From the sequence record KT919973.1: a DNA stretch of 64,000 nt; one strand, given 5' to 3'. Shown here piece by piece: positions 12,901 to 31,128 of the stretch; within the stretch, counting starts at the first letter, position 1, and each line of letters starts with the position of its first letter. The notes below the pieces were generated by a model. That model did not search any database. It was not told the DNA's origin and saw only the letters and a program-made list of their open reading frames with translations. Made by a program: the position numbers and the translations under genes.

Positions 12901-12908
12901 TATAAATA
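12901..12908 (+). promoter_or_regulatory. gp55-dependent late promoter
   Basis: exact TATAAATA 23 nt upstream of ATG 12932. Confidence 0.85.
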
Positions 12909-12931: not shown

Positions 12932-13819
12932 ATGATTATATTCGAGGGATATGACGCGCTATTTGAAGCGTTTGATAGAGCAGCGAATTATGACTGGCTG
13001 ACCGACGACGAAGCGTTTTTTGAAATCGGCGGGACTATGTATAAAGCAATCATAACTAGCAAAGATGAAGCACGCGGACGCATAATTGACGTTTCATTTA
13101 TGTGGAAAAGACCAGATGGTCAGTATTCATATGAATTAAAGAAATCGAGCAACGCGAAAGATTCATTGATGGTAATGAGTACGGTGCTTGCAGCTACGTT
13201 TGACAAGGCTAAACGAGAAAACCCAGATTACATTACATTCAGCGCATTTGCAGACCATGACGACAGAGATGCAAAGAAACGCTATAATCTTTATAAGCGC
13301 ATGGCTGAACGATACGCAAAGCAGATGGACTATACTTTACAAACGCACGGGCGTATGTTTGTATTAAAAAACAACAACCCATCTAATGAAATTAGACGAC
13401 TACCAAATGATGGTATTAAAGTCGAAGATGAGATCACATATGTTGATTTCCCTAGAGTGAACGCATTCACATGGGCGACGCTATTTGAGTGTGAACGACC
13501 TGGTGATTTTGAATTGATTCGTATGACAAATGGGTTCGCTACAATCAAACGAGTTAATGATAAAACAGTTCAAATTAAAGCATCAATCAATGGTAATAAA
13601 TTTGATAATTTAGACACGGTTGAAATATGGGAAAGTCTGCTAGGTACTATTATTGCTAAACCTGCATGGGGTGGTGATGGAGAAGCTGAATTACTAGAGA
13701 AGGGCGCGATTCTAGAAGATGGTAAAATGCTGATTCTTGACTACAACACACTTTACATGGTTGAAAAGGTAAGCGACTTTGAAGAAGTTTGGGGTCATAG
13801 TCTTATTAGAGTTGAATAA
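12932..13819 (+). CDS. putative internal head protein, paralog of the 48401/48859/49781 family
   Basis: late promoter; N-terminus MIIFEGYDALFE-AFDR; shared domain STV..ITFSAF.D..KRYNLYKRMAERYA. Confidence 0.7.
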   Translation: MIIFEGYDALFEAFDRAANYDWLTDDEAFFEIGGTMYKAIITSKDEARGRIIDVSFMWKRPDGQYSYELKKSSNAKDSLMVMSTVLAATFDKAKRENPDYITFSAFADHDDRDAKKRYNLYKRMAERYAKQMDYTLQTHGRMFVLKNNNPSNEIRRLPNDGIKVEDEITYVDFPRVNAFTWATLFECERPGDFELIRMTNGFATIKRVNDKTVQIKASINGNKFDNLDTVEIWESLLGTIIAKPAWGGDGEAELLEKGAILEDGKMLILDYNTLYMVEKVSDFEEVWGHSLIRVE

Positions 13820-13848: not shown

Positions 13849-15477
13849 TCATGGTGTTAGAGGACTACGCTCTTTTGTTAGTCTATCTGCATCGATATCT
13901 ACATCAACAGAACGCATGAAATTGGCTACTTCTGAAAGCTCGTGTAAACGCTCTTGCTTTTTGAAAGCAGACAATACACCTTGCTTCGTATCTTCTTTGA
14001 TTTTCAATCGAATTACAGCGTCGTATTCAGACATTTGAACAACGTCAGCTTCAAACATCGTATTACGGTTGATGATAATCTCTTTTGAGTATTTCATACC
14101 GTGTTTACCTGAAGCTAAAACAGGCAAGCCGCTCGCTTCTATGATGAATACAACATTCATTTTCTTATCTGACTCAAGCAGAGAACGCATATCTGATTTA
14201 CTATTCTTAGCAGTTGAATCAATGATGTTCTTAGAGCTTGATTCAACGAACTTACAAGCAACAAGAGGGTCGATTGACGTTGAGATAAACGCAGTCGAAA
14301 CAAACGAGCCAGATTCAAGAATAGAGCGCACATGTTTACTTGACATTTCACAGCCACGATATAACGTCATTCCACCAGCAATCATACCAGCTTCAGAAAA
14401 CGCTTGGTCGATGCGTGAGACAATCTGTGATTCTTTATCAACACCCGTTCCGTGTAATAACTCTTCATTCACCTTCCATGAAAAACGAGTCGCGGAGTAT
14501 CTAGCAATAGCAGCTTGTGTAAGTGACGATAGACCCGCAAATGAATCTTCCTGCATAAGTTGCAAAGAAAGACGTTCATACTGACTTGCATGAGCACGTG
14601 AGCGAGATTCCATGATACTATTCAGAACGCTTTGAGGCTTCTTCGATTCGGCGATATATGAATTCAATGAAACTGCCACAGTTTCAAGATTCAAACTCAT
14701 ATCAATTAAACCTTTCGCAGCATTAGCAAGAACATGTTCATTGCTTTCATTCAATTGAGAACGAACAGACGAACTTACACGCGCTTCATATTGAGGCATT
14801 TGAAGAACATCATTTGGAACACGTGCAGCGGGGTTTTCTTCTACCCATTTACCTAGTACGTCATCTTCATAGTCGTCATACGCAGCATCGGCAGTTACGA
14901 TAATCGTTTTCTTGCTTGAAATATCAGTTTCGAGTGACATTTTTAACGCAATATCGTTAATTGTTTCTTCAGATGCTTCGAATAGCTTATCGGCATTATA
15001 CCCTGGTTTGGTTACAATAAAGAAGCTGTAATCTTGCGAAATTTCTTCACCACCCACGCCAATGATCTTAGTTGTATCACAGCCGTAACGTAGCTTTTTA
15101 AACAACGTTTTAACGCGCAAGTCGAACATCTTACCCGTACCTAGTTTCTGCACACGCATTGAAACGACATTCGCACGACGTTTGATCATGAAATCTTGAA
15201 CCACTTTAACAATAGTTTGTTGAAGCTTTTGTTCATCTCCCATTTCACGAATAGTAACACCGCCTTTTTTGCCGCGCATTGCTGATACAGTACAGAACCA
15301 CGCACGTTTACCGCGATTTCCGATATCTGATTTTGTTTTAGTTGTGAACGAAACAACGATGTCTCTGGCTTCGCCTTTCATGTCGATCACAAAGAATTTG
15401 TTTTCTTTGGTCGAGCGAGCCGGATAATAGTCGTACGTTGCGCTCATGTTTTCATTTAATTGTTGAAATCCAATCAT
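13849..15477 (-). CDS. alt: Alt-like ADP-ribosyltransferase (virion protein)
   Basis: C-terminal ART motifs LYRG, FISTS, YSKEII; N-terminus MIGFQQLNE; CATAAATA late-like promoter upstream on the minus strand. Confidence 0.8.
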   Translation of the reverse strand: MIGFQQLNENMSATYDYYPARSTKENKFFVIDMKGEARDIVVSFTTKTKSDIGNRGKRAWFCTVSAMRGKKGGVTIREMGDEQKLQQTIVKVVQDFMIKRRANVVSMRVQKLGTGKMFDLRVKTLFKKLRYGCDTTKIIGVGGEEISQDYSFFIVTKPGYNADKLFEASEETINDIALKMSLETDISSKKTIIVTADAAYDDYEDDVLGKWVEENPAARVPNDVLQMPQYEARVSSSVRSQLNESNEHVLANAAKGLIDMSLNLETVAVSLNSYIAESKKPQSVLNSIMESRSRAHASQYERLSLQLMQEDSFAGLSSLTQAAIARYSATRFSWKVNEELLHGTGVDKESQIVSRIDQAFSEAGMIAGGMTLYRGCEMSSKHVRSILESGSFVSTAFISTSIDPLVACKFVESSSKNIIDSTAKNSKSDMRSLLESDKKMNVVFIIEASGLPVLASGKHGMKYSKEIIINRNTMFEADVVQMSEYDAVIRLKIKEDTKQGVLSAFKKQERLHELSEVANFMRSVDVDIDADRLTKERSPLTP

Positions 15478-15568
15478 TTTTATAGACTCACCCTTTAGAA
15501 ATATATGTGTATTTATGATTGCTCATAACACCCGTTGAAATTATTTTAAACTTTTTGTCAGAAAAAGG

Positions 15569-16241: not shown

Positions 16242-17069
16242 ATGACAATCACTAAAGCAGAAATGAAAGCTATCGCAATCGACCTTATGTCTGGTAACAA
16301 CTTGATGAAGCGCGATCTGATTGCAGAAGGTTGGTCATTCGAATTTTCAAAACGTAAAGCTGCACTAGGTGATTGTAACTACCGTACTAAAACACTACGT
16401 CTTTCTGAAAAATTCTTGAACGCTCGTACTAAAGAAGAGCAAATCAACACAATCACTCACGAAATGGCTCATGCGATTGCTTACACTGATTACAACGAAC
16501 GTGGTCACGGTGCTATCTGGAAGCGTGTACACCGTCAACTAGGTGGCGATGCAAAGCGTTGCTCAACTGTATCTAACCCTGATGCTGTAGATAGCAAGTA
16601 CGTTGTTTTCTTCGAAAACGCTCAAGGTGAACTTGAAGTAGTTCAGAAAATGGATCGTTTGACTAAGCGTTTTCAACCAGTACACATCAAGGCTCTATAC
16701 TTGAAAGGTCGTAAAGCTGAAACTGAAGGTCAACTTCGTTGCGTTGCAACATCAACATTCAACGCTATCAAAGCAGATCACGAAGCTAAGAAAGCTGAAA
16801 ATACTAAAGCAGTTGAACCTGTAGCAGCACCTGCACCGAAAGCTGAAAAGAAAGCTGAAGCGCCTAAGCCTGCTAAGAAAGTAAACGCACGTGGTCAAGC
16901 TGCTCGTGACGCAATCGCAGAAATCGTAATGAATACTACTCACAAAGGTTGTAAGTCAGTGTCATTTGAACAGCGTGGTAAATACAAAGATTGGTACATC
17001 ATTATTGAACTAGAAGCTCACACAATCGAAAAGCGTCTAGACACTTTCAAAAAATCTCACGGTTTATAA
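16242..17069 (+). CDS. SprT-like zinc metalloprotease with Ala/Lys/Pro-rich linker
   Basis: LGDCNY, THEMAH, GHG..WK, G..AKRC SprT motifs. Confidence 0.85.
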   Translation: MTITKAEMKAIAIDLMSGNNLMKRDLIAEGWSFEFSKRKAALGDCNYRTKTLRLSEKFLNARTKEEQINTITHEMAHAIAYTDYNERGHGAIWKRVHRQLGGDAKRCSTVSNPDAVDSKYVVFFENAQGELEVVQKMDRLTKRFQPVHIKALYLKGRKAETEGQLRCVATSTFNAIKADHEAKKAENTKAVEPVAAPAPKAEKKAEAPKPAKKVNARGQAARDAIAEIVMNTTHKGCKSVSFEQRGKYKDWYIIIELEAHTIEKRLDTFKKSHGL

Positions 17070-17234: not shown

Positions 17235-17474
17235 ATGATAACGATATACACAATTCCCAACTGTGACGGCTGTCGTCACGCAATTTCCCTCTGTAAGTTC
17301 AAAAACGTCCCGTACACTGTAATAGAGTTACAGTCTCAATCTGATATCGATAAATTGCATGAGAAACTTGGTGGGGTGCGCAACATTCGCGTGCCTCTTG
17401 CTATGCATGGTGATACATACATAGGTCATCTTCCAGAACTCAAGCAATGGGTTGATAACCAGACATATAAATAA
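17235..17474 (+). CDS. glutaredoxin (NrdH/NrdC-like)
   Basis: TIYTIPNCDGC CxxC motif, VP..YIG. Confidence 0.88.
   Translation: MITIYTIPNCDGCRHAISLCKFKNVPYTVIELQSQSDIDKLHEKLGGVRNIRVPLAMHGDTYIGHLPELKQWVDNQTYK
17466..17473 (+). promoter_or_regulatory. late promoter
   Basis: exact TATAAATA upstream of the gp24-like gene. Confidence 0.85.
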
Positions 17475-17529: not shown

Positions 17530-18429
17530 ATGACTGTATCTAATAGTAACGGTTTACCAGACATTGTTTCTGTTCAAAAACGACTATACCCGTTAATATT
17601 TACGCAAATCGTTTCAGAACAGCCAACAACTCAACCGGTTGCGACTGCGTTCGGTTTCAAATCTGTAGCTGAAGCTGATGACGCGAGTGGGTGGCTGCCA
17701 CATGGTTTTAGACTTGATCGCTGGTATGCACAAGTTCAATCATCAAAGCTAAAAACTGAAATCTCACTTGAAACAATTCAAGACATGCAAGCACTTGGTG
17801 TCAATGAATCGATTATCACAGATTCTATTGCTGATCAAATCGCAGATGACATCAACACTAATATCATCGATGCACTAAACAGTATTTCAACTGTTGGTAG
17901 TGCAATTACGCTATCTGCTATTACTAACCGTTTTGATAAAGGTCGAGAATTATACTCGTTCGTCCATGCATCTGCTGCTGAGATTGAAAAGTCAACGGGT
18001 TGTACAGGTACATATATCGTAGCAGGTGGTGAAGCATTTGGTCTATTGACGGGCACTGGTATGGCTACACAGATTGGTGATACTAGCATGTATAAATGTG
18101 ACTCTGGGTTATATCTAGTTCATGACAAGTATGCAACGACTGACTACGTAACAATTGGTGTTAAGAAAGAACTTGGTGATTATGAAATCTCAAGTTTAGT
18201 ATTCAGCCCATACAACTTTGACAAAGCAACAGACGCTGGTATTGCATATCAATATAAAACACAAGACTCAAAATCATTCCACCCAATTTACGGTGTGATT
18301 GCTCGATACGCATTGACCGTTGCACCATTAGAAGATAATCAAACGGGTGCAGTTGAAATCGATTGGGATAATCTTGGTGTTCTTGCGAACAGTTCTAAGC
18401 TGTCATACACTCACGCAGTAACGGTATAA
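17530..18429 (+). CDS. 24: capsid vertex protein (gp23/gp24 family, short form)
   Basis: IFTQIVSEQPTTQPVATAFGF, SSKLKTEISLETIQD, ARYAL match the gp23/24 pattern; late promoter. Confidence 0.8.
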   Translation: MTVSNSNGLPDIVSVQKRLYPLIFTQIVSEQPTTQPVATAFGFKSVAEADDASGWLPHGFRLDRWYAQVQSSKLKTEISLETIQDMQALGVNESIITDSIADQIADDINTNIIDALNSISTVGSAITLSAITNRFDKGRELYSFVHASAAEIEKSTGCTGTYIVAGGEAFGLLTGTGMATQIGDTSMYKCDSGLYLVHDKYATTDYVTIGVKKELGDYEISSLVFSPYNFDKATDAGIAYQYKTQDSKSFHPIYGVIARYALTVAPLEDNQTGAVEIDWDNLGVLANSSKLSYTHAVTV

Positions 18430-18437
18430 GGTGTGAC

Positions 18438-18950
18438 ATGAAAAATCATTATGTAGATAATAAAGCCCTGTACGCATCTTTATGCGAATGGAAAAGCGAA
18501 ATGAAGAAACACCCTGATGCTGCAATTCCCGTCCCTGACGTGGTAGCAATCAGTATCATGAAGATCAGCGAGAATTTATCTCGCCGTTACAATTTTAGTG
18601 GGTATACTGCAACCTGGAAAGAAGAGATGATTGGTGACGCAATCGAACATTGCTTGCGCTATATCAAGAACTTCGACACTGACAAGTATAACAACCCACA
18701 CGCTTATATCACTCGTATTTGCTTCAATGCGTTTGTACAACGTATTAAGAAAGAAAGAAAAGATACAGCGATTAAATATAAAGTATTCTTATGTGATTCG
18801 TCTAACTACTCGATTGATGGTGAAGAAACTGATTTCGATTTTCTTCAACAGATGTTAGAACGTGTCAATTCTTACGAATCTGGCAAGACTGCTAAAGCTC
18901 AACCAGATGAACAGAAAGAACCACTTAACTTACAGAAATTTTACGATTAA
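18438..18950 (+). CDS. 55: late transcription sigma factor
   Basis: HYVDNK, RRYNFSGYT..WKEEMIGDAIE, NPHAYITRICFNAFVQRIKKE. Confidence 0.96.
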   Translation: MKNHYVDNKALYASLCEWKSEMKKHPDAAIPVPDVVAISIMKISENLSRRYNFSGYTATWKEEMIGDAIEHCLRYIKNFDTDKYNNPHAYITRICFNAFVQRIKKERKDTAIKYKVFLCDSSNYSIDGEETDFDFLQQMLERVNSYESGKTAKAQPDEQKEPLNLQKFYD

Positions 18951-18959
18951 GGAATTAAC

Positions 18960-20405
18960 ATGTTAGGTAACTTTGACTCATTTCTGAGTGAAAATCGCCG
19001 TCAAACTCAGGGTGGTAAAATCTACCCTAAGTTTGGTCAAGTTATTGTTGAGCTAGGCACTGCATCTACTGAGTTCAGCAAAGGCAAAGGCGTTGAAACA
19101 ACTATCGGCATGATGGAAAAGGCAAATGAGCTTAAATCTATCATGAGTACTAAACTTGCTGAAGATAAAAACGTCGATGAGAAAAACTTCGATATCAATC
19201 TGAGCGAGAACGTAAGCACAATCAACTTGCTTATGGAAAACGAATTCTTATCATTGCCAGCACATGAGCTACAGCAAGTTAAGTCTATGATCATGTGTAC
19301 TGAAGCGCGTCTTCCTAGCATCGTGATTAAAGGCGGTTACTTAGATCAAGTTGTTGCTGAAGCGACTAAGCTTGGTTATAAGAAAAATGACATTCACGTT
19401 GTTTTCCCTATGCGTGAAATGAAAATTAATCTTGCTGATTCTGATAAGCTTGTAATTGAATCGCTATCAATCGACGACAATTCAGCCTCCGAAGTACTGT
19501 CAATGGCTGAAAACATCGAGCTTGGTGACGTTTATGTGACTGTTGAATCGGTTGATTCAAAAGCCGAACTGTCTGACATCACTGAGATGAAAATCAAGTC
19601 TGGTAAAAATGCACTTACATTGGCTGCACTGAACCGTAAAATCATGGACTTGTTCATTGTAAAAGAAGCGAAAGACGTATCATACGCTCGTGAACGTAAA
19701 GACGATACTGGCTTGCCGATGCTAGAAGGCTTCAAAGCATACGATCTGAAACAGAACATCACCATGATTGAACATGCTCAGAACGTTTTCACGAAAGAAA
19801 TCGCGACTGCGCCACTGACATCGACTGCATGGCAAAATCTTGTTGATGTGAAAGAAGCGTATTTTGACAACGGTTGGAAGCTGAAACACAACAACACAAG
19901 TATTGTTCTAACAAACGCGGAACATGCTATGCGTGCAAGTCGTACGTGTTATGAATACCGTGTTGAACTGTCTGAAGCTGGTTACCCGCTTCTTGATATG
20001 ATTGCGATGATGGAACGTAAAGGCGTGAAACGTTTTGACTGTAAAGCATTTGCTGAAGCTATGCTATCGTTCGATGGTTGTGTTACCCCTGAGCGTCAAA
20101 CAGTGACTGCATTTTCAACAATGGCTGAGTCGAATCGTGTATTCCACCCGAATATCATGTCTAGTCTACGTCCAGTGACTGAAATGGTTGATGATGTTGA
20201 TTCACTGATTCGTGCTCTTGCAAATGATCAGTTCAGTTCATTCAAGGTTGGTCAATCTTTCTCTGAAGCGATGCTTGATCAAGAAACACTTTACTCGATG
20301 ATGGAAAACATCGTTGAAAACGGCGTTGACGTTTCGGTTGACGGTACTTTGATTGAGTTCAGCGTTAACGCAACGAACTATCTGATTGATATTGATATTA
20401 AGTAG
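18960..20405 (+). CDS. putative internal head protein, possibly a degenerate P-loop kinase
   Basis: N-terminus MLGNFDSFLSE; GGKIYPKFGQV..GKG, KLGYKKNDIHVV; function inferred only. Confidence 0.55.
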   Translation: MLGNFDSFLSENRRQTQGGKIYPKFGQVIVELGTASTEFSKGKGVETTIGMMEKANELKSIMSTKLAEDKNVDEKNFDINLSENVSTINLLMENEFLSLPAHELQQVKSMIMCTEARLPSIVIKGGYLDQVVAEATKLGYKKNDIHVVFPMREMKINLADSDKLVIESLSIDDNSASEVLSMAENIELGDVYVTVESVDSKAELSDITEMKIKSGKNALTLAALNRKIMDLFIVKEAKDVSYARERKDDTGLPMLEGFKAYDLKQNITMIEHAQNVFTKEIATAPLTSTAWQNLVDVKEAYFDNGWKLKHNNTSIVLTNAEHAMRASRTCYEYRVELSEAGYPLLDMIAMMERKGVKRFDCKAFAEAMLSFDGCVTPERQTVTAFSTMAESNRVFHPNIMSSLRPVTEMVDDVDSLIRALANDQFSSFKVGQSFSEAMLDQETLYSMMENIVENGVDVSVDGTLIEFSVNATNYLIDIDIK

Positions 20406-20412
20406 GTGTGCA

Positions 20413-21060
20413 ATGAAGCAATTTGGTGAATTTTTAACTGAAGTACAAAAGTACAGTTCCGCAGCAACGTCGATACGTGGTAAAGAAGTAGCAGCACTGG
20501 TTAAACTATACAAGAAAGGTATGTTTACACCGGGTGGTACTGCTCTTGACTATGGTGCTGGTAAATACGGTCGTAACGCTGAATTTTTACGCTCTGAAGG
20601 CATCAAAACGTATGCATATGACAAATTCAATGGTACATCTGCTGATGGTTGGACTGATGTCAGTCTGACTATCCCAAATGGGGAATCATTCGATACGGCG
20701 TTTACTTCTTACGTACTGAACGTTGTACCTGAAGAAGTCGAAGCAGAGATTATTCGTGATGTTGAGTCTCGTGCTCGTGGTAAAGTTTTCCATATCACTC
20801 GCGGTACTGACATTACTCAAACTGTGTTGAACGTGATCAGTGGTAAAAGCAAAAACGATATCATGATGCAATTCATTGCTCAAGAATATCCAGATCTGTC
20901 TATGCAGATTGAAGCAGGTAATGCAACAAGAGACGTGGCTAAAGAAATTGCTACTCGCGGTGTAGTTACAGCGAAAGACAGCTTTCAACGTATTCCAGAC
21001 CTTTCAAAGTACGGTTACAAGAAATCTGGTTCAGGTGCTTCGGTAGTTTGGACAAAATAA
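20413..21060 (+). CDS. class I SAM-dependent methyltransferase with capsid-targeting-like N-terminus
   Basis: ALDYGAGKYGR motif I, YAYD, FDTAFTSYVLNV; starts MKQFGEFLTE. Confidence 0.75.
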   Translation: MKQFGEFLTEVQKYSSAATSIRGKEVAALVKLYKKGMFTPGGTALDYGAGKYGRNAEFLRSEGIKTYAYDKFNGTSADGWTDVSLTIPNGESFDTAFTSYVLNVVPEEVEAEIIRDVESRARGKVFHITRGTDITQTVLNVISGKSKNDIMMQFIAQEYPDLSMQIEAGNATRDVAKEIATRGVVTAKDSFQRIPDLSKYGYKKSGSGASVVWTK

Positions 21061-21077: not shown

Positions 21078-21132
21078 AAAAGGGTTGCTTCGGCAACCCT
21101 TTTTGCGTATTATAGCTCTATCGAAACGAGAT
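21078..21132 (+). promoter_or_regulatory. terminator hairpin / early promoter cassette
   Basis: GGGTTGC-TTCG-GCAACCC-TTTTT; TTGCTT-N17-TATTAT; identical copy at about 36805. Confidence 0.85.
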
Positions 21133-29169: not shown

Positions 29170-29661
29170 ATGGACATCTTTGAATTCCTAGCGAAAGGCG
29201 AAGAAACTGAAGCGAGAATCGCTGAAGAAGAAAAAGAATACGAAGAAGAGCTGAAGAAAGCGAAGAAAGCAGAGAAATATTCACCGTTTGATTTCGTTGA
29301 CAGTATCTACATGAAGAAACGTTTACCAGATGCTGTTGTTGATGAGCAATATCTACCATTTATGGTGAATCGCGCATTGAGCAACGGCATCGATACAGTT
29401 CTTCATGCGTATATCATGGATTCGGTTGGTAGTAAGTTACCGAATGAAATGCAATATGATTATTTGTATCATGCAGTTCGTAAAGGTAAGCGATTCAATT
29501 CATGGGCAAAAGAACCGAAATATGACTATGTTGATCTAATTGTTGAGGTATACAACGTCAATAAATCACATGCAATTAGTATTTCAAATCGTCTAACGCC
29601 CGAAGAGTTGAATCAATTACAAGAATGGTACGACTCACGAACGGGGGGCTTAACACGCTAA
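29170..29661 (+). CDS. 62: clamp loader small subunit
   Basis: YLPFMVNRALS..QYDYLYHAVRKGKRF. Confidence 0.9.
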   Translation: MDIFEFLAKGEETEARIAEEEKEYEEELKKAKKAEKYSPFDFVDSIYMKKRLPDAVVDEQYLPFMVNRALSNGIDTVLHAYIMDSVGSKLPNEMQYDYLYHAVRKGKRFNSWAKEPKYDYVDLIVEVYNVNKSHAISISNRLTPEELNQLQEWYDSRTGGLTR

Positions 29662-30242
29662 ACAGAATCGGGTTTATGTTTGCAGTTGTCATTGTGCCAA
29701 CGTTTGATAGTTGCGGCATTCTTTGAAGATTTGCCGCAATGAATACAAACTGAAATTGGTCTCTCATCCCAACTGTCGCTAATCTTTTTCTTTACATCGC
29801 GTGTTCTCTCAACTCCTTTGAATGTAGACGGTACACCCTTTCGATTACTAGGCTTCCCGACTTTAGCATCACTGAGCTTTTGTTTATGTTCATTGCTCTT
29901 GGGCTTGCCTTTAAGAGAGTCTGAAATATTTCGGCGAGTTGTTTCGGAACGTTTAGTTCCCTTTACACTACCGCCTTCGCCGCCTATTTTGAGATTATAG
30001 GTGTTTTTACTACTTACAAAATTTTCGTTCACTATCAGAGATTCGTATTCATATGCGTCTTCTTCGCAGTCGAACGTTTTTAAAATTATCTTTGTGAAAT
30101 TATCAACACCGTATTTATCAATTGAGCGAAATATAATCTTTCCAGAACCCATGTAACCGTCGTCGATGTTATTCGTTGAGTGTTTACCAATATAAACTTT
30201 ATTGTTTATGTTGTTTATTATTTTATATACGATATGAAACAT
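29658..30242 (-). mobile_element. free-standing GIY-YIG (Seg-like) homing endonuclease with NUMOD3-like repeats
   Basis: IVYKIINNINNKVYIGKH..YMGSG..YN...GG; basic ETRRNISDSLKGK-type repeats; start trimmed to MFHIVYK. Confidence 0.88.
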
Positions 30243-30264
30243 AATAATTCTCTTTATTTTCTGA

Positions 30265-30276
30265 TATTTATAAATA
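30265..30276. promoter_or_regulatory. palindromic bidirectional late promoter
   Basis: TATTTATAAATA contains TATAAATA on both strands, between the endonuclease and regA. Confidence 0.7.
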
Positions 30277-30307
30277 GTGAGACATACATAATGATTACGA
30301 GGCTGCA

Positions 30308-30691
30308 ATGGCAGATTACATTAACAAACTTGAAATTCAATTACCAGACGACGATGCATTTCTAAAAATTCGCGAGACTTTAACGCGAATTGGCATCGCC
30401 AATAACAAAACAAATACTCTATATCAATCGTGCCATATTCTTCAGAAACGTGGCGTGTATTTTCTAGTTCACTTTAAAGAGCTTCTAGCACTTGACGGTC
30501 GATGTGTAGAAATTACTGACGAAGATATTGAACGTCGTAATAACATTGCCAAGTTACTTGAAGACTGGAATCTATGTAAAATCGCGCACCCTGAGTCGCA
30601 CGAATTTACTGGCGATAATAAGTTTCGCGTGATCTCGTTCCGCGATTCTAAAAACTGGAATCTACGATACAAGTATAAGATAGGTGCATAA
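30308..30691 (+). CDS. regA: translational repressor RegA
   Basis: FLKIRETLTRIGIAN..LYQSCHILQKRG.Y..VHFKELL. Confidence 0.97.
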   Translation: MADYINKLEIQLPDDDAFLKIRETLTRIGIANNKTNTLYQSCHILQKRGVYFLVHFKELLALDGRCVEITDEDIERRNNIAKLLEDWNLCKIAHPESHEFTGDNKFRVISFRDSKNWNLRYKYKIGA

Positions 30692-31128
30692 TGAAAACTT
30701 ACACTGAATTTTTGAGCGAATATCACATGCAACACCGAGCGCCGTCACCTCCTGATGACAGCCCTCTGTACGATATCTCATTGACGGGAACATTCCCTGA
30801 AGATGTATACGAAGCGAACGGTCTACGATGGTACGGCAATCACAATGATCGCGATGAGCGCGAGGCGTATCAAATCATCAAACGCTGTCACGGAAACCCG
30901 AATGCGAAAGTTAAAATCTATCGCGCATGTCCCGAGCACGTCAGCGTAATCAACTCAGGCGATTGGGTTACGATTGTCGAGAATTATGCAAAATCGCATC
31001 AAGAGTCTCGCGACTATTCAAGTGAAATTTCAAACGACGATGAGCGTTATCATGTGATCAGTCAAGTTGTACTTGCTAAACAACTCTTCACCGAGGGATA
31101 TTTCCTTGAGTGGGGATACGTTAAGTAG
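30691..31128 (+). CDS. putative internal head protein, ADP-ribosyltransferase-like fold
   Basis: MKTYTEFLSE targeting-like peptide; VKIYRA, GDWVT..YA..H, EWGY. Confidence 0.6.
   Translation: MKTYTEFLSEYHMQHRAPSPPDDSPLYDISLTGTFPEDVYEANGLRWYGNHNDRDEREAYQIIKRCHGNPNAKVKIYRACPEHVSVINSGDWVTIVENYAKSHQESRDYSSEISNDDERYHVISQVVLAKQLFTEGYFLEWGYVK

Follow-up and report, generated by a model that had tools for sequence, protein, structure and literature searches.

We hold with moderate confidence that the gene phiST2_0312 of Vibrio phage phi-ST2 encodes a class I S-adenosylmethionine (SAM) methyltransferase that is led into the phage head by a T4-type capsid-targeting sequence (CTS), processed by the gp21-type prohead protease, ejected together with the DNA, and acts in the earliest phase of infection. 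The gene occupies positions 20413–21060 (plus strand) of a 64,000-nucleotide stretch, referred to here as the window, which is the last 64 kb of the phi-ST2 record KT919973.1 (by exact overlap, the window begins at record position 186486). Packaging in the virion is well supported by the presence of a close orthologue in particles of phage 6E351A, and a class I SAM-methyltransferase fold with an intact SAM site is well supported by modeling and alignment, whereas leader cleavage, ejection, catalysis, and the target molecule are what we infer. The protein is a precursor of 215 residues (23.6 kDa) with an ATG start, preceded by a Shine–Dalgarno-like TAGGTG. phi-ST2 belongs to the genus Schizotequatrovirus and is a KVP40-like, T4-type jumbo myovirus; the 3.4 kb surrounding the gene are 100% identical to phi-ST2 and 84% identical to KVP40. 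phiST2_0312 is orthologous to KVP40.0066, both are annotated as "hypothetical protein", and the group of phiST2_0312, PHROG 14016, has no function assigned in PHROG. A preceding sequence-only reading had picked out this open reading frame (ORF), the N-terminus MKQFGEFLTE, and several methyltransferase motifs. The exact position was confirmed, the leader forms residues 1–10, and all quoted motifs are present in the translation (LDYGAG at residues 45–50, YAYD at residues 67–70, and FDTAFTSYVLNV at residues 93–104).

The N-terminal leader and the particle proteome

In T4, the propeptides that internal proteins carry comprise 10–19 residues, of which the first 10 of IPIII are enough for packaging; residues 4 and 7 mainly govern targeting, and residues 8 and 10 govern processing (PMC9026906). 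The protease gp21 cleaves after Glu, for example at ITE-6 and LTE-619 in Alt and at LIE-9 in gp21 (PMC5694885, PMC9026906). The phiST2_0312 leader MKQFGEFLTE (codons 1–10, positions 20413–20442, plus strand) follows this rule with F4, F7, L8, and E10, and gp21 cleavage is predicted after Glu10 (LTE-10). Comparison with the internal proteins of T-even phage RB32 (DQ904452; accession from PMC3037559), namely Ip4 (MKTYQEFITE), Ip7 (MKTFKEFINE), and Ip9 (MKTYQEFISE), revealed 6 identical and 2 conservative positions. The whole phi-ST2 genome was assembled and 412 genes were called for a leader scan. A rule-type pattern (hydrophobic residues at positions 4 and 7, LIVMF at position 8, and Glu at position 10) matched 3 phi-ST2 proteins, compared with 1.1 expected. 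The specific pattern MK.[FY].EF[IL].E matched the same 3 of the 412 N-termini, compared with 0.0005 expected, and matched no internal site in the 78,497 residues of the phi-ST2 proteome. The published T4 rule, the RB32 leaders, and this count thus agree with the earlier view that the N-terminus is capsid-targeting-like.

Among the close orthologues, 8 have the leader, and 7 of the 8 keep positions 4, 7, 8, and 10 and vary at positions 3, 5, 6, and 9. The leader is displaced by one residue in the D481 orthologue and is missing from a ninth close orthologue. The phi-ST2 genome has a gene for a gp21-type prohead protease (Peptidase_S77, E = 1.9e-98), beside which gp67, gp68, gp22, and gp23 are annotated. 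Since Glu10 is the sole [LI]-x-E site in phiST2_0312, the protease would leave the mature enzyme intact.

A 2025 study of Schizotequatrovirus analyzed polyethylene glycol (PEG)-precipitated particles of 6E351A by tandem mass spectrometry (MS) in two replicates (PMC12028318). The 6E35.1a orthologue of phiST2_0312 (QZI87378.1, that is, MYOV011v1_p0106 or VP6E351A_0103; 216 residues, PHROG 14016) is 79.9% identical and stands in the same gene order as in phi-ST2 (alc / SprT-like / nrdH / gp24 / gp55 / ORF478 / methyltransferase). It was detected with 31 and 79 spectral counts (PMC12028318 Table S4) and was given by the authors as a hypothetical protein, without comment (PMC12028318). The counts per kDa were 2.3 for this orthologue, 2.8 for Alt, 2.8 for the tail tube, 3.7 for the portal, and 1.0 for the prohead protease, compared with 0.02–0.45 for non-structural carry-over (ligase, thymidylate synthase, SSB, dUTPase, helicase, and NAMPT). 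The same list contains an internal control: the gp24-like protein was detected, and gp55 and ORF478, whose genes are presumably co-transcribed with it, were not. The near-Alt counts per kDa and the absence of gp55 and ORF478 together make packaging well supported. Of the earlier proposal that the enzyme is packaged in the head, presence in the particle therefore stands on published MS of an 80%-identical orthologue, whereas the location in the head, the cleavage, and the ejection are deductions.

Two further leader-bearing ORFs were found in phi-ST2. The first (80 residues, MKTFDEFITE) is located outside the window (KT919973.1 101694–101936, minus strand) in the tRNA cluster, a location resembling that of the RB32 Ip genes, and has a weak match, starting at profile position 1, to PHROG 2667 "internal head protein". 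In the phi-ST2 annotation, only a 46-residue version of it is given (phiST2_0182), in which the leader is lost. Its 6E351A orthologue VP6E351A_0394 (MKTLQEFLAE; 6 and 10 counts) and the neighboring paralogue VP6E351A_0391 (MKTLAEFLGE; 12 and 13 counts) were both detected in particles, and all three are probably internal proteins of the KVP40 group. Every leader-bearing protein that was mapped is thus in the particles (3 of 3), against a background of 94 of ~430. The second ORF (145 residues, MKTYTEFLSE; positions 30691–31128, plus strand, after regA) occurs in 8 Vibrio phages only and is absent from 6E351A. Its domain matches PHROG 2579 "ParB C-terminal domain", and the alignments with its homologues in ~160 mycobacteriophages begin only at residue 8–10, so the leader on this protein looks grafted.

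The methyltransferase fold and its phage family

According to the alignment and the model, the methyltransferase domain spans approximately residues 17–215 (positions 20461–21057, plus strand) and includes a GGTSI-like N-terminal strap, FHITRG/FHITRN and FQRIP blocks, and a helical insert (residues 135–182). Three elements, all on the plus strand, would form the SAM site and its surroundings: (i) motif I, LDYGAGKYGRN (positions 20545–20577), the SAM-binding glycine loop with a TehB-like "GRN", over which the protein also aligns with TehB; (ii) YAYD (positions 20611–20622) at the end of strand β2, with the invariant Asp70; and (iii) FDTAFTSYVLNVVP (positions 20689–20730), which comprises strand β4 and the following loop at the motif IV position and reads LNVVP, not (D/N/S)PP(Y/F/W). 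In class I methyltransferases, an Asp at the position of Asp70 binds the ribose of SAM. In a conservation alignment of 40 relatives, reaching down to 35% identity, the invariant residues are D46, G48, A49, G50, R54, and R60 in motif I and the next helix, D70 at the end of β2, and F93, L102, N103, and V104 in β4. Three family-specific blocks are also invariant, that is, T19-S20-I21, H127/R130, and G183/Q192/R193.

The target protein itself scores 15.5 bits (E = 0.014) against Pfam Methyltransf_23 (PF13489), the gathering cutoff of which is 27 bits. PF13489 is matched by 32 of the 40 relatives at E ≤ 0.01 (best 1.3e-7), TehB is matched by 5 of the 40, and relatives fused to other domains score 30–35.7 bits on PF13489, above the gathering threshold. 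An AlphaFold model built from the 40-relative alignment has a predicted local distance difference test (pLDDT) score of 89.3 and a predicted template modeling (pTM) score of 0.84, with disorder limited to residues 1–12 (pLDDT <50). The model and the alignment together reveal the alternating β/α fold of the class I type, which has a central seven-stranded sheet, the motif I loop, and an acidic residue ending β2. A Foldseek search of the PDB returned 174 matches at E ≤ 0.001. With few exceptions, the best 50 of the 174 are class I SAM methyltransferases or entries deposited as putative ones, with probabilities of 0.99–1.00, TM-scores of 0.4–0.52, and identities of 8–17%; they include ChlM, toxoflavin N-methyltransferase, BelI, CysG, PrmA, and PKMT1. 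Single-sequence and profile searches found no significant sequence relative in the PDB. The model, the Foldseek matches, and the PF13489 matches of the relatives agree with the class I SAM-methyltransferase fold that had been proposed. Because the TM-scores are just 0.4–0.5, the substrate is not readable from the structural relatives, and because no close relative is characterized, homology gives no substrate either.

The protein has numerous relatives: 233 were identified in a 90%-clustered collection, and an exhaustive search identified 516 cluster representatives at E ≤ 0.001. Cultured carriers identified by tblastn are 49 phages, all of Vibrio, comprising the KVP40 group and outliers, and hundreds of relatives come from metagenomes. 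A scan of 185,579 species-representative cellular genomes with the two most conserved peptide patterns yielded no relative. In the BFVD fold search, the sole close match is a KVP40-group orthologue and the rest are generic methyltransferase folds; the fold also occurs inside phage proteins of 1,100–1,300 residues. Homologues are fused to ART-PolyVal (P0259), GNAT (P0137), and DUF5661 (P0134 and P0127) domains. A further candidate fusion, P0247 (1,322 residues), was a false positive, being a Cna_B repeat protein.

Among 136 distant single-domain members, 58% have an N-terminal [LIVMF]-x-E with Glu at residues 6–12, mostly 8–10. The corresponding figures are 19% for the N-termini of phi-ST2 (Fisher p ~ 1e-16) and 7–24% for equal-sized internal windows of the same proteins. 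A stricter leader expression with two hydrophobic residues before x-E matched 29% of the members and was dropped for the motif of the literature. The IMG/VR loci around the homologues are those of T4-like phages. The homologue lies directly beside the portal (gp20), gp21 protease, and gp23 genes in one contig (L019), adjoins tail-sheath and head-completion genes in two (L023 and L026), and lies near gp43, gp41, and UvsW in three (L020–L022). An SprT-like zincin is encoded within 3 kb of it in two contigs (L017 and L025), and rIIA lies nearby in a Tara contig. The T4-type late promoter consensus is found as a perfect TATAAATA ending 5 nucleotides before the start codon of the homologue in L025, and ATAAATA stands at the same place in L018 and L010. 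Three small genes with methyltransferase folds follow one another in L010, a 72-kb contig of an uncultured phage (positions 8851–10693, plus strand; Methyltransf_24, Methyltransf_23, and, in third place, the homologue).

The four-gene unit and other loci

phiST2_0312 closes a compact unit of four genes, at the head of which stands a late promoter consensus. The consensus TATAAATA (positions 17466–17473, plus strand) lies 57 nucleotides before the first gene, which encodes a gp24-like capsid vertex protein (positions 17530–18429, plus strand; 90 and 145 counts for the orthologue in 6E351A particles). It is followed by gp55, the late sigma factor gene (positions 18438–18950, plus strand), and by ORF481 (positions 18960–20405, plus strand; 481 residues with no assigned function), which ends 7 nucleotides upstream of phiST2_0312; the orthologues of both are absent from particles. 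The gaps are 8 nucleotides between the gp24-like gene and gp55, 9 between gp55 and ORF481, and 7 between ORF481 and phiST2_0312. No plus-strand terminator was found within the four genes. The next one, an intrinsic terminator with an 11-bp stem, a UUCG loop, and a U-run (positions 21078–21108, plus strand; −17.7 kcal/mol, z = −4.8), closes the unit. The window contains 5 matches to the late consensus, compared with 3.0 expected by chance. gp55 has to be produced ahead of late transcription, and a unit that holds the gene of the late sigma factor itself cannot be exclusively late. The "late operon" of the sequence-only reading is therefore only partly supported by the sequence: a late consensus heads a terminator-free unit, but gp55 lies inside it and the consensus is barely enriched.

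Two neighbors in the unit have features of their own. The gp24-like protein has just 299 residues and matches positions 129–368 of 376 of the Gp23 Pfam profile, that is to say, its C-terminal two-thirds; the KVP40 record mentions a possible internal deletion in the gene, and the protein is nonetheless abundant in 6E351A particles. ORF481 begins with MLGNFDSFLSE, which is leader-like and one residue out of register. Its orthologue VP6E351A_0102 was labeled "Defense?" by the 6E351A authors, it has no match in Pfam, PADLOC, or NCBIfam, and it was not seen beside methyltransferase homologues outside the KVP40 group. ORF481 was not counted as a second CTS protein, its orthologue being missing from particles; an N-terminal [LI]-x-E alone is therefore insufficient for packaging. 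A Rosetta-stone link between phiST2_0312 and ORF481 through the 543-residue homologue P0121 was rejected (BLASTP E = 20).

Several further loci lie in the window. The longest ORF of alt (positions 13849–15477, minus strand) begins 10 codons upstream of the annotated start with MIGFQQLNE, a leader-like peptide that has an L-x-E at residue 9, so the annotated version may be too short at its start; ATAAATA lies at positions 15510–15516, on the same strand as alt and 33 nucleotides upstream of this longest ORF. Next to alt, a perfect TATAAATA (positions 12901–12908, plus strand) directly precedes an ORF of 295 residues (positions 12932–13819) that matches no family. In 6E351A particles, the orthologue of this ORF, VP6E351A_0094 (33 kDa), was detected with 16 and 61 counts, so the ORF encodes an uncharacterized virion protein. 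An SprT-like zincin of 275 residues (positions 16242–17069, plus strand; PF10263, E = 1.5e-19) is encoded between alc and nrdH, near alt. At positions 30265–30276, between a Seg-like homing endonuclease gene (positions 29658–30308, minus strand) and regA (30308, plus strand), TATAAATA occurs once on each strand, and the two matches overlap; judged by sequence, these may be late promoters that point in divergent directions, or the AT-rich spacer may have produced them by chance.

Comparable systems, candidate substrates, and meaning

Comparison between phiST2_0312 and known systems revealed that (i) the T-even internal proteins (T4 IPI, IPII, and IPIII; RB32 Ip4, Ip5, Ip7, and Ip9) carry a near-identical 10-residue leader, MK-x-[FY]-x-E-F-[IL]-x-E, and resemble it also in the gp21-type protease of the genome, the presence in particles, and the scattering of their genes among early and accessory genes. 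They comprise 85–190 residues and are mostly non-enzymatic, whereas the mature phiST2_0312 protein would be a 205-residue enzyme fold with SAM motifs, and the sequence similarity is confined to the leader; (ii) T4 Alt, a head-packaged ADP-ribosyltransferase ejected with the DNA, is alike as an enzyme cargo that uses an abundant host cofactor to modify macromolecules. gp21 processes Alt at [IL]-T-E sites, to which the predicted site LTE-10 of phiST2_0312 corresponds, and tens of Alt copies are packaged; the phi-ST2 alt gene lies 5 kb from phiST2_0312, and the particle counts per kDa of their orthologues are similar. Alt differs in its fold, in NAD+-dependent ADP-ribosylation as opposed to SAM-dependent methylation, and in that its targets are known; (iii) Methyltransf_23 and TehB share the Rossmann fold, the "G-x-G-x-x-GRN" motif I, the acidic residue after β2, and the FD...VL block of β4, and lack the GGTSI, FHITRG/FHITRN, and GFQRIP blocks and the four-helix insert.

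The sequence-only reading knew of no characterized injected phage methyltransferase, which overlooked DarB of phage P1. This antirestriction protein, which has a DNA-adenine-methyltransferase domain, is packaged in the capsid and leaves it along with the DNA (PMC5512222, PMC12810830). DarB shares with the phiST2_0312 orthologue that a methyltransferase-domain protein is carried in the particle, and is otherwise unrelated in size, family, and loading route. It has ~2,000 residues, an N6-adenine methyltransferase of the EcoKI/TaqI type with NPP(Y/F), a fused SF2 helicase, and loading via DarA/Hdf, whereas phiST2_0312 has 215 residues, neither NPPY nor a helicase, and a T4-type leader for loading. 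Polyvalent proteins, which phages bring into the cell when infection begins (PMC5512222), offer a further comparison. Some homologues qualify as such in the sense of Iyer et al. (2017), combining the methyltransferase with ART-PolyVal (P0259) or GNAT (P0137), and the SprT-like zincin, their hub domain, is encoded near phiST2_0312 in phi-ST2 and near homologues in two uncultured contigs. phiST2_0312, by contrast, is a solo domain, and the methyltransferase described by Iyer et al. (2017) is an EcoKI/TaqI-type adenine methyltransferase (PMC5512222).

A host macromolecule, either protein or RNA, is the most likely substrate as far as the sequence features can tell, and is favored over DNA because (i) neither a motif IV of DNA methyltransferases nor a recognition domain is present, (ii) no DNA methyltransferase is among the best 50 of the 174 fold matches, (iii) the fusion partners modify proteins or other macromolecules, and (iv) dPreQ1 is the only modified base reported in 6E351A virion DNA. 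In that DNA, dPreQ1 (295 Da) occurs at 15% of deoxyguanosine, and no methylated form is mentioned (PMC12028318). Methylation of the phage DNA, one of the substrates suggested at the outset, is thus not apparent for the bulk genome, and methylation of dPreQ1 was set aside as the function, the reported 6E351A base being unmethylated. Sequence, alignment, and model show no (D/N/S)PP(Y/F/W), no Pro-Cys, and no extra domain; given LNVVP at the motif IV position and no space for a target-recognition domain, the protein would not be a DNA methyltransferase of a known class. We consider it unlikely that phiST2_0312 is a packaged DNA methyltransferase protecting the phage DNA from restriction, in the head or in cis on entry, as DarB would. 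The packaging evidence applies equally to such an enzyme, a CTS-targeted staphylococcal nuclease acts on DNA within T4 heads (PMC3012670), basic residues are conserved in the family, and DarB provides a precedent, but the motif IV position, the missing Pro-Cys motif, the 215-residue size, which is too small for a target-recognition domain, the fold matches, and dPreQ1 as the sole base reported, with no methylated derivative mentioned, all speak against it. The weak similarity of relatives to TIGR04096, a dnd-associated family of putative methyltransferases, also seemed to favor a DNA substrate, and the sequence-only reading had drawn from a comparable likeness to phosphorothioation-associated methyltransferases a possible anti-defense role. 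Three distant relatives (P0017, P0039, and P0052) do match TIGR04096, at 20–27 bits against a cutoff of 150 bits and over profile positions 14–87 of 478 only, that is, the SAM-binding N-terminal ~70 positions; the target itself has no match to TIGR04096 at E ≤ 0.1, and NCBIfam and PADLOC are also empty for it. On these profile comparisons, the likeness is a resemblance of the SAM-binding core and not membership, and lends an anti-Dnd role no support.

It is quite unlikely that the protein is a small-molecule or metabolic methyltransferase (TehB/Methyltransf_23-like) acting in the infected cell. In this reading, carry-over would account for the particle signal, and the leader would be a gene-start cassette passed on by inheritance. 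Methyltransf_23 and TehB are indeed the nearest sequence families, most of the top structural matches are small-molecule methyltransferases (ChlM, toxoflavin N-methyltransferase, BelI, and CysG), and the PEG preparation includes some metabolic enzymes (NAMPT, dUTPase, and GTP cyclohydrolase). However, the counts per kDa exceed those of the carry-over enzymes 5- to 100-fold and are close to those of Alt, gp55 and ORF478 are missing from the particles, and 3 of 3 mapped leader-bearing proteins are in them, compared with 94 of ~430. An inherited cassette is also at odds with a leader in which positions 4, 7, 8, and 10 are conserved and positions 3, 5, 6, and 9 are variable, and with the highly significant enrichment of N-terminal [LIVMF]-x-E across the family. 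Very unlikely is a packaged but inert methyltransferase fold, retained as an internal protein for DNA binding or for a structural role, or an enzyme whose substrate is a virion component at the time of assembly. The internal proteins of T-even phages form a diverse group and often work through binding, for example IPI*, the mature protein is basic (pI 8.9), and the Pfam score of the target is below threshold; against this, motif I, Asp70, and the β4 block are invariant down to 35% identity, as in an active SAM site, and the fusion partners are other modifying enzymes (ART and GNAT).

Several points weigh against a head-delivered, host-directed enzyme. The particle data come from another phage and from PEG-precipitated particles with some cytoplasmic carry-over, and the 6E351A table gives spectral counts only, with cleavage and a location in the head as opposed to the tail being deduced. 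ORF481 has MLGNFDSFLSE but its orthologue is not in particles, and 42% of the distant members are missing even the simple N-terminal motif. The target lies below the PF13489 cutoff (15.5 vs 27 bits) and has no sequence-level relative in the PDB, and its structural matches reach TM-scores of 0.4–0.5 only. Matches to the late consensus hardly exceed chance in the window (5 vs 3), and gp55 lies within the unit. The conserved R54, R60, H127, R130, and R193 would suit a nucleic acid or another anionic substrate.

For the head-delivered methyltransferase that we prefer, we propose the following course. During prohead assembly, residues 1–10 would dock the precursor onto the scaffolding core, and the gp21-type prohead protease would then remove the leader by cutting after Glu10. 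The mature protein (205 residues, 22.4 kDa, mildly basic with a pI of 8.9) would remain enclosed in the head alongside the DNA, at a copy number roughly like that of Alt, that is, tens of copies. The enzyme would leave the head with the DNA, as Alt and the T-even internal proteins do, and would use the SAM of the host to methylate its target at the onset of infection, before phage gene expression. The route itself (CTS, gp21, internal head proteins, and Alt) is classical, and a methyltransferase-fold cargo on this route would be new; full-text literature searches found no description of such a cargo on the CTS/gp21 route or of a phage-only family of such cargo.

Proteins ejected with the phage DNA act ahead of all phage gene expression and are the first line of takeover and counter-defense. 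To our knowledge, the cargo of T4-type phages has consisted of small binding proteins and a single enzyme, Alt, and a methyltransferase cargo would bring new chemistry to this first strike. The finding would also give a candidate role to one of the many "hypothetical" proteins in the virion proteomes of jumbo phages, and the 10-residue leader, which predicts virion content from sequence (3 of 3 mapped), may aid the annotation of T4-like genomes. More tentatively, a phage-only family of SAM methyltransferases, delivered by the head and widespread in marine T4-like phages, might have phiST2_0312 as its founding member, and these enzymes would methylate one specific protein or RNA of the host in the first seconds of infection. 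If so, this methylation would be the counterpart of ADP-ribosylation by Alt, for the takeover or the disarming of the cell, and the T4 leader would be a general and evolvable address tag that natural phages have grafted onto enzymes of differing origin. The family may matter for the infection of abundant ocean bacteria, since marine metagenomes contain hundreds of its members and the scanned cellular genomes contain none.

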